Sequence record: MT995927.1
Length of the DNA: 64,000 nucleotides
Strand: one strand, 5' to 3'
Under the pieces are notes generated by a model. The model saw nothing but the letters and a program-made list of their open reading frames with translations, searched no databases and had not been told where the DNA came from. Shown here piece after piece: positions 6,801 through 8,642 of the stretch. Every line of letters begins with the position of its first letter. The stretch's first letter is position 1. A program made the position numbers and the translations under genes.

Positions 6801-6851
6801 GAGTGTGCTCTCAAGTAAATCATTTTAATTCATAAGATAACCCATGGCAAC

Positions 6852-6878
6852 ATAAAAGAGTAGCCGAAGCTACTCTTT
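6852..6878 (-). terminator. Terminator after the tRNA-Asp/Asn transcript
   Basis: Minus strand reads AAAGAGTAGC-TTCG-GCTACTCTTTT. Confidence 0.85.
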
Positions 6879-6884
6879 AGAAAT

Positions 6885-6971
6885 TGGCTGGTAAGGTAGG
6901 ATTCGAACCTACGGTGGGCTTTCGCCAACGGATTAACAGTCCGCTCCCTGCTACCACTCGGGTACTTACCA
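6885..6971 (-). tRNA. trnN: tRNA-Asn(GTT), 87 nt, with long variable arm
   Basis: Folded by hand: acceptor TGGTAAG/CTTACCA, anticodon arm GCGGA-CTGTTAA-TCCGT, T arm GTAGG-TTCGAAT-CCTAC, G73, encoded CCA. Confidence 0.9.
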
Positions 6972-6980
6972 ATGAAATCG

Positions 6981-7017
6981 TAAAAGTCACTTGCTCTACC
7001 GACTGAGCTATCACGGA
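6981..7017 (-). pseudogene. Truncated tRNA 5' half (Asn-like body, TTT in the anticodon position)
   Basis: TCCGTGA-TA-GCTC-AGTCGGTA-GAGC-A-AGTGA-CTTTTA, then no 3' anticodon strand, T arm or acceptor strand. Confidence 0.75.
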
Positions 7018-7023
7018 ATTAAA

Positions 7024-7100
7024 TGGCGCGCCCAAGGGGACTCGAACCCCTGACCACCCGCGTGACAGGCGGGTATTCTAACCAACTGAACTATGAGCGC
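7024..7100 (-). tRNA. trnD: tRNA-Asp(GTC)
   Basis: Acceptor GCGCTCA/TGGGCGC, anticodon loop CTGTCAC, GTTCGAG T loop, G73, encoded CCA. Confidence 0.95.
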
Positions 7101-8073: not shown

Positions 8074-8150
8074 TGGTGGGCCCAGCAGGACTTGAACCTG
8101 CGACCAAGCGATTATGAGTCGCCTGCTCTAACCAACTGAGCTATAGGCCC
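8074..8150 (-). tRNA. trnI: tRNA with CAT anticodon, Ile2 (lysidine, AUA-reading) type rather than Met
   Basis: GGGCCTATAGCTCAGTTGGTTAGAGCAGGCGACTCATAATCGCTTGGTCGCAGGTTCAAGTCCTGCTGGGCCCACCA; the anticodon arm and T arm match the gammaproteobacterial ileX pattern as recalled. Confidence 0.85.
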
Positions 8151-8472: not shown

Positions 8473-8548
8473 TGGTCGGAGTGGGGAGACTCGAACTCCC
8501 GACATCCTGCTCCCAAAGCAGGTGCGCTACCAACTGCGCTACACTCCG
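8473..8548 (-). tRNA. trnP: tRNA-Pro(TGG)
   Basis: Acceptor CGGAGTG/CACTCCG, anticodon arm CCTGC-TTTGGGA-GCAGG, A73, encoded CCA. Confidence 0.95.
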
Positions 8549-8557
8549 TATTTAAAT

Positions 8558-8642
8558 TGGTGCCCGAAGTCGGATTCGAACCGACAAGACCGTAGCCGGA
8601 AGATTTTAAGTCTTCTGTGTTTACCAATTTCACCATTCGGGC
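8558..8642 (-). tRNA. trnL: tRNA-Leu(TAA)
   Basis: Acceptor GCCCGAA/TTCGGGC, anticodon arm GAAGA-CTTAAAA-TCTTC, long variable arm, A73, encoded CCA. Confidence 0.95.

Follow-up and report, generated by a model that had tools for sequence, protein, structure and literature searches.

How did a phage tRNA-Asn come to carry the long variable arm of a class II tRNA, and does it still work as a tRNA-Asn? These questions are raised by one gene of phage U1B (genus Phikzvirus, host P. aeruginosa), since in bacteria the class II architecture is taught as limited to Leu, Ser, Tyr and Sec. The gene lies in a stretch of 64,000 nucleotides from record MT995927.1, referred to here as the window (Table 1). 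A preliminary description of this DNA reported a gene of 87 nt with the anticodon GTT, the pair U1:A72, the discriminator G73, a 3-bp D arm and a 15-nt variable region containing GGC-GAAA-GCC, and all of these are present in the sequence. It was silent on the minus strand and on a 37-nt tRNA-Asn half upstream of the gene.

The gene is a real tRNA and is correctly called Asn. Positions 6885-6971 match Rfam RF00005 with 55.8 bits against a gathering score of 29 (E 2.5e-9), and the single-sequence fold of this region is a cloverleaf with an additional hairpin. The acceptor stem UGGUAAG/CUUACCA provides the U1:A72 pair and is followed by G73 and an encoded CCA. The D stem has 3 bp (CCC/GGG) with a G13.A22 mismatch, the anticodon loop is CUGUUAA and the T arm reads GUAGG-UUCGAAU-CCUAC. 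Between the anticodon and T arms, the 15 nt of the variable region, U-GGC-GAAA-GCC-CACC, form a 3-bp stem and a 4-nt tail. U8 and A9 can be read directly, and the invariant nucleotides are kept (U8, A14, G18G19, U33, the T-loop UUCGAAU and the 3' CCA). The D loop has two additional nucleotides, and position 10 is C, not G. A class I body, with its variable loop of 4-5 nt and no supernumerary D-loop base, does not describe this molecule.

Table 1. Long-arm tRNA-Asn gene of U1B and neighbouring features in the window.
Feature	Position	Strand	Basis or remark
Long-arm tRNA-Asn(GUU)	6885..6971	minus	ARAGORN, Rfam and fold; 87 nt including the encoded CCA at 6885-6887
Hairpin of 10 bp with UUCG loop, then a U run	6855..6878	minus	Fold of 6850-7023; just after the CCA
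Junction CGATTTCAT, 9 nt, 5' edge of the inserted cassette	6972..6980	minus	Follows the split class I tRNA-Asn in phiKZ too
Class I tRNA-Asn stump, tRNA positions 1-37	6981..7017	minus	One-base difference from the intact phiKZ class I gene
tRNA-Asp(GUC), upstream neighbour	7024..7100	minus	ARAGORN
tRNA(CAU)	8074..8150	minus	ARAGORN, Rfam
tRNA-Pro(UGG)	8473..8548	minus	ARAGORN, Rfam
tRNA-Leu(UAA)	8558..8642	minus	ARAGORN, Rfam

An alignment of 63 diverse relatives contains compensatory changes at 18 of the 20 consensus pairs of the acceptor, D, anticodon and T stems, so the cloverleaf is no chance fold. The stems of the extra arm vary as well and yet stay complementary (GGC/GCC, GUC/GAC, UCC/GGA, GAC/GUC and others). 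The GAAA loop in this alignment is imposed by the search pattern; GNRA loops (GAAA, GCAA, GUAA) also recur in long-arm tRNAs that were found independently of it. This bears on one of the roles considered in the preliminary description, that of a decoy, and likewise on any other non-translational RNA, such as a tRNA mimic that absorbs a nuclease or primes another process. The unusual shape speaks for a decoy and nothing else does, while the covariation of four stems and the retention of the invariant nucleotides, the T-loop box, the encoded CCA and the whole identity set all speak against it, and we put its probability close to nil.

The Asn-type identity that had been read from GUU, G73 and U1:A72 stands, as does the likeness of the body to tRNA-Tyr. 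We compared the architecture of the long-arm tRNA-Asn genes with that of the class II tRNAs from the same loci. Among the matches listed, long-arm tRNA-Asn has a variable stem of 3-4 bp, an unpaired 3' tail of 3-4 nt and G73 (77/81); tRNA-Tyr has a stem of mostly 3 bp, a tail of mostly 3 nt and A73 (41/41); tRNA-Ser has a stem of 4-8 bp, a tail of 0-1 nt and G73 (38/49); and tRNA-Leu has a stem of mostly 3-5 bp, a tail of 1-2 nt and A73 (56/56). The stem of the long-arm family is usually capped by a GNRA loop, and its dimensions (3-4 bp, a 4-nt loop and a tail of 3-4 nt) are those of phage tRNA-Tyr, unlike Ser and Leu. The 3-bp stem and 4-nt tail of the U1B tRNA lie outside the ranges of tRNA-Ser in particular. 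With bacterial and phage tRNA-Tyr the U1B tRNA shares a 3-bp D stem with a 13.22 mismatch, a D region of 18 nt and a short arm made of a 3-bp stem, a loop of 3-4 nt and an unpaired 3' tail of 3-4 nt; over most of the body it is about 80% identical to the tRNA-Tyr of Acinetobacter phage TAC1. It differs from tRNA-Tyr in having GUU instead of GUA, G73 instead of A73 and U1:A72 instead of G1:C72, so the Tyr identity positions have all changed to Asn values.

The nearest bodies outside Asn are those of a long-arm tRNA-Lys (identity 0.77) and a tRNA-Tyr (0.74), compared with about 0.64 for class I tRNA-Asn. With the class I tRNA-Asn that stands beside tRNA-Asp in phiKZ, the U1B tRNA has in common the loop CUGUUAA, G73, U1:A72, the encoded CCA and the slot after tRNA-Asp. 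The two differ in the variable region (15 nt, not 5), in the two additional D-loop nucleotides and in the D arm, which is CCC/GGG in U1B and GCUC/GAGC in the class I gene.

Asn identity consists of the anticodon and G73, which can confer it on a different tRNA body (PMC9976931). Both GUU and G73 are present in the U1B tRNA. Tyr identity requires A73, which is critical for TyrRS, together with U35, and Leu identity requires A73 (PMC9976931). Taken together with these rules, the data on G73 and GUU argue for a true Asn acceptor and against charging with Tyr, Leu or Ser.

In P. aeruginosa, AspRS is non-discriminating and GatCAB serves solely as an Asp amidotransferase (PMC2330236). For Asp-tRNA-Asn to be amidated U1-A72 is required, while G1-C72 and an extra base in the D loop oppose the reaction (PMC9976931), the extra base being an antideterminant in tRNA-Asp (PMC9976931). 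Bacterial GatCAB reads the U1-A72 pair and the D loop, and the tail domain of GatB has been modelled near the variable loop (PMC2811023). The U1B tRNA has the U1:A72 pair on which bacterial GatCAB depends. From GUU, G73 and U1:A72 it can be proposed that the tRNA would be charged with Asp by the non-discriminating AspRS of the host and then amidated by GatCAB. However, with two additional nucleotides in the D loop, C10 and an arm near the GatB tail, acceptance by GatCAB is not assured.

The first base pair varies within the family. Of 90 unique long-arm tRNA-Asn, 43 have U1:A72 and 34 have G1:C72 with G73, among the matches listed. Where the host of the phage is named, U1:A72 is found in phages of Pseudomonas (phiKZ-like and PA1C-like phages and Milchi) and in Xanthomonas phage BUDD, whereas G1:C72 is found in the enteric phages Shivani, Gravdalen and nepoznato. 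A Bradyrhizobium tRNA array has U1:A72 too, and AsnRS does not score above its family cut-off in that genome (91.8 bits, with 342.6 required). As far as sequences can tell, this pattern fits a GatCAB determinant that is retained wherever charging takes the indirect route. However, the enteric phages are closely related, so few independent lineages stand behind a connection of the 1:72 pair with the host.

It had also been suggested that the tRNA recodes Asn codons because it stays Asp-charged or is Tyr-charged, and charging by SerRS would likewise insert a wrong residue. In favour of this reading, the body is class II, G73 is the usual discriminator of tRNA-Ser as well (38/49, among the matches listed), and the extra D-loop bases might hinder GatCAB. 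However, TyrRS and the Leu system depend on A73, the 3-bp stem and 4-nt tail are unlike those of tRNA-Ser, and U1:A72 is kept exactly where GatCAB is the route. Moreover, in several phage groups the long-arm gene is the sole phage tRNA-Asn, and Asn makes up 6% of the codons. We consider recoding highly improbable.

The distribution of the long-arm form points the same way. The preliminary description would have given up a special role for this tRNA if long-arm tRNA-Asn proved to be common in Pseudomonas phages and to behave ordinarily, and as far as occurrence goes it is common in phages. A BLAST search with the 87 nt against 50,697 phage records returned 368 matching records, including T5-like Salmonella and Escherichia phages (Shivani, 83 nt), the T4-like Erwinia phage Gravdalen (84 nt), Escherichia phage nepoznato (86 nt) and Pseudomonas phage Milchi (87 nt). 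Look-alikes with other anticodons were returned too, namely a tRNA-Lys(CUU) of Caulobacter phage CcrColossus and tRNA-Tyr genes of Acinetobacter and Ralstonia phages. Long-arm tRNA-Asn is present in 22 of 51 phiKZ/PA1C-type records, in Milchi and phiPsa374-like phages, and in several hundred T5-like records.

A search pattern was built from the GUU loop, a GAAA located 3-6 nt past the anticodon stem and the T-loop box. It matches at least 119 IMG/VR contigs, and ARAGORN finds at least 130 tRNA-Asn of 80 nt or more at the IMG/VR loci, of which at least 90 are unique. In prokaryotes (one genome per species, 185,579 species) the same pattern gives 19 matches. A true long-arm tRNA-Asn is present at 15 of these 19 loci, nearly all of them in tRNA clusters with 3 to 22 tRNAs per locus. 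Most are on MAG contigs; one is from an isolate, Bradyrhizobium sp. Ai1a-2, where 22 tRNAs lie within 8 kb. With so few matches in so many species, and with the tRNAs clustered, the type is essentially confined to phages and mobile tRNA arrays. We found no earlier description of long-arm tRNA-Asn or of long-arm phage tRNAs in a literature in which older subscription papers, such as the T5 tRNA sequencing of the 1980s, were mostly not covered.

The extra-arm shape is normal for a large family of phage tRNA-Asn. In the examined part of the tRNA region of Shivani and Gravdalen, the long-arm gene is the sole tRNA-Asn and a separate tRNA-Tyr is present; for T5-like phages, Gravdalen and U1B, no other phage tRNA-Asn was seen. 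tRNAs for Lys, initiator Met, Thr, Cys and Trp have long-arm versions as well, and these mostly keep their own discriminator: among the matches listed, long-arm tRNA-Cys has U73 in 6/6, tRNA-Lys has A73 in 3/4, and the CAU tRNAs have A73 with an initiator-like C1.A72 mismatch in 4/5. As this shape is usual across the family, and as G73 is found in 77 of 81 long-arm tRNA-Asn among the matches listed, nothing supports a singular device for recoding or a decoy.

The origin of the gene can be studied from its neighbourhood. ARAGORN finds five tRNA genes in the window, all on the minus strand; six are present in the whole U1B record, the long-arm gene being the only tRNA-Asn among them. The window has 37.6% G+C, and in its 30 longest ORFs Asn codons reach 60 per 1000 (about 6%), which makes a demand for this tRNA plausible. 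A 2.3-kb segment around the gene is 100% identical to T2P, U5 and phi9_PA9 and about 89% identical to phiKZ.

According to the phiKZ annotation and sequence, most phiKZ-like phages have tRNA-Asp followed by a class I tRNA-Asn. The intact class I tRNA-Asn adjoining tRNA-Asp in phiKZ was the reference for the stump comparison. The U1B stump corresponds to the 5' strand of the acceptor stem, the D arm and the 5' part of the anticodon stem and loop through A37, and its anticodon G34 has become T, giving CTTTTA. A motif for the 3' half of the class I gene was not found in the window. In the alignment between U1B and phiKZ, the flanks of the phiKZ class I locus are present on both sides, with tRNA-Asp upstream and the terminator hairpin downstream, while the 3' part of the class I gene is swapped for the junction and the long-arm tRNA. 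The right boundary of the swap is a short stretch just past the CCA that is similar in both loci. The identical junction occurs at this paralogous tRNA-Asn site beside tRNA-Asp in 8 records including U1B. The hairpin after the CCA also stands after the class I tRNA-Asn in phiKZ, and is probably the terminator of the tRNA transcription unit; a consensus terminator scan has no entry for it.

The source of the swapped segment is visible in phiKZ, which has two tRNA-Asn genes, a class I gene right after tRNA-Asp and a long-arm gene about 2 kb away. On its 5' side the long-arm gene has the same stump and junction as in U1B, and on its 3' side a terminator and the HNH endonuclease gene PHIKZ296. Past PHIKZ296 lies the missing class I 3' half, from A38 through the CCA. 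The insertion, made up of the junction, the long-arm tRNA, the terminator and PHIKZ296, is 774 bp long and sits between A37 and A38. In PA_ZH1 the class I tRNA-Asn is intact at this site and the flanks are 99.5% identical. Altogether the site is filled by the 774-bp unit in about 10 records and empty in about 20, in the same tRNA-Asn gene. The split halves in phiKZ are mutated, with one change in the anticodon stem and three in the T loop, which indicates that the stumps are decaying and are not spliced. A group I intron was considered for the phiKZ insertion, where Rfam gives no intron family at E up to 10, and for 12 split-tRNA loci, where it gives none at the gathering score.

The PA1C group has the same layout of a 5' stump, the long-arm tRNA, a full-length HNH gene of 185 aa and a 3' stump. 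The identity is about 92% over the tRNA and stump and about 83% across the wider cassette, and the tRNA-Asn gene that holds the PA1C cassette has an acceptor stem that differs from that in phiKZ. PHIKZ296 and its PA1C homologue contain an HNH_3 domain (phrog_15471), and in the phiKZ copy the ATG is out of frame at an A run. A Protein Data Bank sequence search with the PA1C endonuclease gave no match, and Pfam gave no significant domain in its C-terminal half. Both the activity and the target of the cassette endonuclease are predictions from sequence. A literature search on phiKZ tRNAs and their endonucleases found no mention of the long-arm gene. In U1B, neither a PHIKZ296 homologue nor the endonuclease ORF of the cassette was found in the window or in the whole record, while the tRNA and the stump are present; U1B has thus kept the cargo and the scar and lost the endonuclease.

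Relatives of PHIKZ296 lie among tRNA genes at 77 of 80 viral loci. Many share only the C-terminal domain, which holds a conserved motif. The closest viral relative, 43% identical over the full length, splits a tRNA-Lys(UUU) gene between A37 and A38, and the two halves of this gene still pair perfectly. Another lies between a long-arm tRNA-Thr(UGU) and a class I 3' stump, in the same order as in phiKZ. In a structure-aware scan, insertions of 80-900 nt were found to interrupt the anticodon loop of further class I tRNA genes, and several of these split genes span PHIKZ296-like endonuclease genes. A long-arm tRNA lies directly downstream of an endonuclease gene in 4/31 cases compared with 22/443 (71 loci, p = 0.08), and we accordingly claim no general association between endonucleases and long-arm tRNAs. 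Among the viral loci scanned, a class I stump immediately upstream of a long-arm tRNA-Asn is found in phiKZ and the PA1C group only. Neither an endonuclease gene nor a stump adjoins the long-arm gene of T5-like phages and Gravdalen, so the arm is older than the cassette and independent of it.

These results can also be read without any role for the endonuclease. tRNA genes would then have recombined or duplicated with the HNH gene as a bystander, and the arm would be a neutral legacy of a tRNA-Tyr whose anticodon changed. The absence of any HNH gene beside the U1B tRNA, the short homologies flanking the U1B replacement, a body nearer to tRNA-Lys and tRNA-Tyr than to class I tRNA-Asn, and the neighbour enrichment that falls short of significance are all in line with such a history. 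It does not account for a tRNA and an HNH gene that are present or absent jointly as one 774-bp unit with exact boundaries in the anticodon loop, for the same unit inside the tRNA-Asn gene of the diverged PA1C group, or for the location of the closest HNH relative at 37/38 of another tRNA gene. We regard the bystander history as improbable.

The preliminary description had proposed a nuclease-resistant replacement tRNA. The replacement part of this proposal stands in altered form, since the tRNA substitutes for the class I gene of the phage itself, broken at the DNA level by an HNH cassette; nothing indicates that it substitutes for a host tRNA attacked by an RNA nuclease. A counter-defence at the RNA level would mean that the arm resists a tRNA nuclease or a tRNA-modifying toxin, from the host or a competitor, that disables class I tRNA-Asn, so that translation continues once the host tRNA-Asn is lost. 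Class I and long-arm tRNA-Asn coexist at at least 27 viral loci, Xanthomonas phage BUDD pairs the two forms for both Asn and Lys, and several of the other isotypes with long-arm forms (Lys, initiator Met, Thr, Cys, Trp) are known targets of tRNA nucleases, all of which could be expected from such a defence. Phage tRNAs reportedly evade host anticodon nucleases through changes of the anticodon loop (van den Berg 2023, Azam 2024). The loop CUGUUAA is, however, the same as in class I phage tRNA-Asn, whereas the published evasion alters this loop; a tRNA-Asn-specific nuclease of P. aeruginosa was not identified here, and the insertion scars in the DNA would be left unexplained. We think counter-defence unlikely.

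Some support for transcription is provided by four RNA libraries that hold a phiKZ-type phage. In these, the long-arm tRNA and the stump are covered by a contig (window 6876-7010) that carries the phiKZ allele at 6953 and extends into the phiKZ terminator flank. The depths of the tRNA contig are 18.8, 196, 59.6 and 21.4 in the four libraries, against about 23, 36, 68-88 and 3-7 for its neighbours, depth being a poor measure in these contig-only runs. The contigs are compatible with transcription as a precursor but fall short of proof because they are strandless and DNA carry-over is possible.

From all this, we consider it probable that the gene encodes a working tRNA-Asn, a cassette-borne substitute for a split class I gene that now serves as the sole tRNA-Asn of the phage. 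We suggest the following scenario. In phiKZ-like phages, the long-arm tRNA-Asn would be the cargo of a mobile cassette with an HNH homing endonuclease gene. The cassette would enter the part of a class I tRNA-Asn gene that codes for the anticodon loop, destroying the gene and at the same time supplying a substitute. In the lineage of U1B, the left junction and the tRNA of the cassette could have taken the place of the 3' portion of the class I gene beside tRNA-Asp, the endonuclease gene and the 3' stump being gone. The tRNA would be cotranscribed with the tRNA cluster and freed from the dead stump by RNase P. Asp charging by the non-discriminating AspRS and amidation by GatCAB would then follow, and the product would serve an AT-rich phage in which Asn accounts for about 6% of the codons.

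The arm itself may provide immunity against endonucleases or resistance to RNA nucleases, or it may be a legacy of tRNA-Tyr. We favour the first of these roles, speculative as it is, in which endonucleases directed at class I tRNA genes would cut the long-arm gene poorly. The altered flanks, together with a spacing from anticodon loop to T-loop box that is 10 bp longer, could be sufficient for this. Modular endonucleases with a shared C-terminal DNA-binding domain would cut class I genes at the anticodon-loop region, and a 10-bp insertion would leave a tRNA gene that is uncuttable and still functional. That the extra arms on Asn, Lys, Thr, Cys, Trp and initiator Met tRNAs all represent immunity against the endonucleases of tRNA arrays is a tentative extension, to which we give a modest chance at best. 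If it is true, cassettes that bring cut-proof substitutes would burden the phage less as they spread, homing elements would have a novel means of compensating their hosts, and class II-like tRNAs would have arisen repeatedly by this route.

The consequences extend beyond U1B. Phage-borne long-arm tRNAs for Asn, and apparently also for Lys, Thr, Cys, Trp and initiator Met, keep their own discriminators, and if they are charged, the synthetases and GatCAB must accept the extra arm. phiKZ-like phages, including the phage-therapy candidate OMKO1, carry either class I or long-arm tRNA-Asn and so provide natural matched pairs.

Three known systems resemble the cassette in part. SegB of T4 is a free-standing homing endonuclease encoded in the T4 tRNA cluster, and its recognition site includes the T-loop box (PMC2330249). 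Here too an endonuclease gene lies among phage tRNA genes, and SegB drives the preferred inheritance of its region (PMC2330249). However, SegB is a GIY-YIG enzyme located between genes, whereas the cassette enzyme is of the HNH_3 type, lies inside the anticodon loop of a tRNA gene and comes with a substitute tRNA. Phage tRNAs that escape nucleases are also isoacceptors unlike the host tRNA and able to replace it. Unlike these, the U1B tRNA has an unchanged loop, and the documented event is the disruption of a gene at the DNA level. Finally, group I introns in the anticodon loops of bacterial tRNAs occupy the same insertion region and can contain an endonuclease ORF, but the cassette has too little non-coding sequence for a ribozyme core. 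Splicing is also not what restores function here, since the tRNA halves on either side of the cassette are in decay or have been lost and a separate tRNA gene takes over. We found no description in the literature of a homing-endonuclease cassette that interrupts a tRNA gene in its anticodon loop and brings along a substitute with the same specificity but another structure. A cassette that breaks a gene and yet brings a divergent replacement is a solution distinct from that of self-splicing introns and inteins.

The class I tRNA-Asn stump that lies directly upstream of the long-arm tRNA-Asn(GUU) in the window was reported by no tRNA finder and carries no annotation in the U1B record. The RNA runs X1, X2 and X13, which are stored as contigs, contain contigs of very high depth (reaching about 4,270) over window positions 6896-6913 and 6981-7010. 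The match of these contigs is limited to the T arm and the D arm, with ACCAATTGGT in between, and they are probably host tRNA-Lys(UUU); they make the depth look greater than it is in parts of the phage's tRNA region. The CAU tRNA of the window is labelled Met in most records, whereas PA02 and Churi label it Ile. One possibility is a lysidine-dependent tRNA-Ile2 for AUA codons, which occur in the window at a frequency of about 10 per 1000.

In viral tRNA arrays, insertions of 80-900 nt interrupt the anticodon loop of many class I tRNA genes, and the split isotypes are Lys, Thr, Pro, Cys and Asn. The complementarity between the halves is still kept, and several of the insertions contain endonuclease genes. 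An Rfam search of these split genes found no group I intron. In one viral array, a ROOL RNA (L187 3379-3968; Rfam RF03087, 320 bits) adjoins a split tRNA-Pro gene.

In phiKZ, the HNH endonuclease gene of the insertion that splits a class I tRNA-Asn gene, PHIKZ296, has an ATG that is out of frame with the remainder of its ORF (L005 1900-1980, i.e., about 269400-269480 of NC_004629), because the A run contains one extra A relative to PA1C. In the phiKZ record the annotated protein is shorter and begins with an internal Met. Sequencing error, slippage and decay are all possible causes of the extra A.

tRNA features in the window and in compared loci (L numbers; coordinates within each viral locus or tRNA array)
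Feature	Location	Strand	Remark
5' half of class I tRNA-Asn gene	window 6981-7017	minus	37 nt; G34 mutated to T
tRNA(CAU)	window 8074-8150	minus	
Split class I tRNA gene	L154 2418-3091		
Split class I tRNA gene	L178 2011-2817		
Split class I tRNA gene	L187 1893-2813		
Split class I tRNA gene	L197 1937-2837		
Split class I tRNA gene	L219 1982-2806		
Split class I tRNA gene	L099 6661-7629		
Split class I tRNA gene	L062 56-254		
Split class I tRNA gene	L079 5746-6058		
Long-arm tRNA, non-Asn set	L004 296-385		
Long-arm tRNA, non-Asn set	L130 1491-1580		Xanthomonas phage BUDD
Long-arm tRNAs, non-Asn set	L134 2648-2831 and 4666-4749		Bradyrhizobium sp. Ai1a-2
Long-arm tRNA, non-Asn set	L166 2786-2870		
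Long-arm tRNA, non-Asn set	L192 2786-2870		
Long-arm tRNA, non-Asn set	L228 2922-3005		
Long-arm tRNA, non-Asn set	L193 2081-2162		

Long-arm forms are also seen for Lys (CUU and UUU), for a CAU tRNA with C1.A72, and for Trp, Cys and Thr. In most of these the extra stem is short, often with a GNRA cap, and the discriminator is the one expected for the tRNA's own isotype. The isolate Bradyrhizobium sp. Ai1a-2 (NZ_AUEZ01000004) packs 22 tRNA genes into 8 kb, with long-arm Asn, Lys and Met among them, and its genome shows no AsnRS above the family cut-off.

In Xanthomonas phage BUDD (L130 1491-2172), Lys(CUU) and Asn(GUU) are each represented by a class I tRNA next to a long-arm one, and there are two tRNA-Asp as well, all of them without annotation in its record. 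Pseudomonas phage Milchi (L129 1501-2080) has three genes in succession, for a class I tRNA-Asn, a small HNH endonuclease and a long-arm tRNA-Asn. Astolliot, a relative with 97% identity, matches no more than about 39% of the 900 nt surrounding this row, and no tRNA-Asn annotation was found under the match. The Milchi endonuclease belongs to a different family from that of PHIKZ296.
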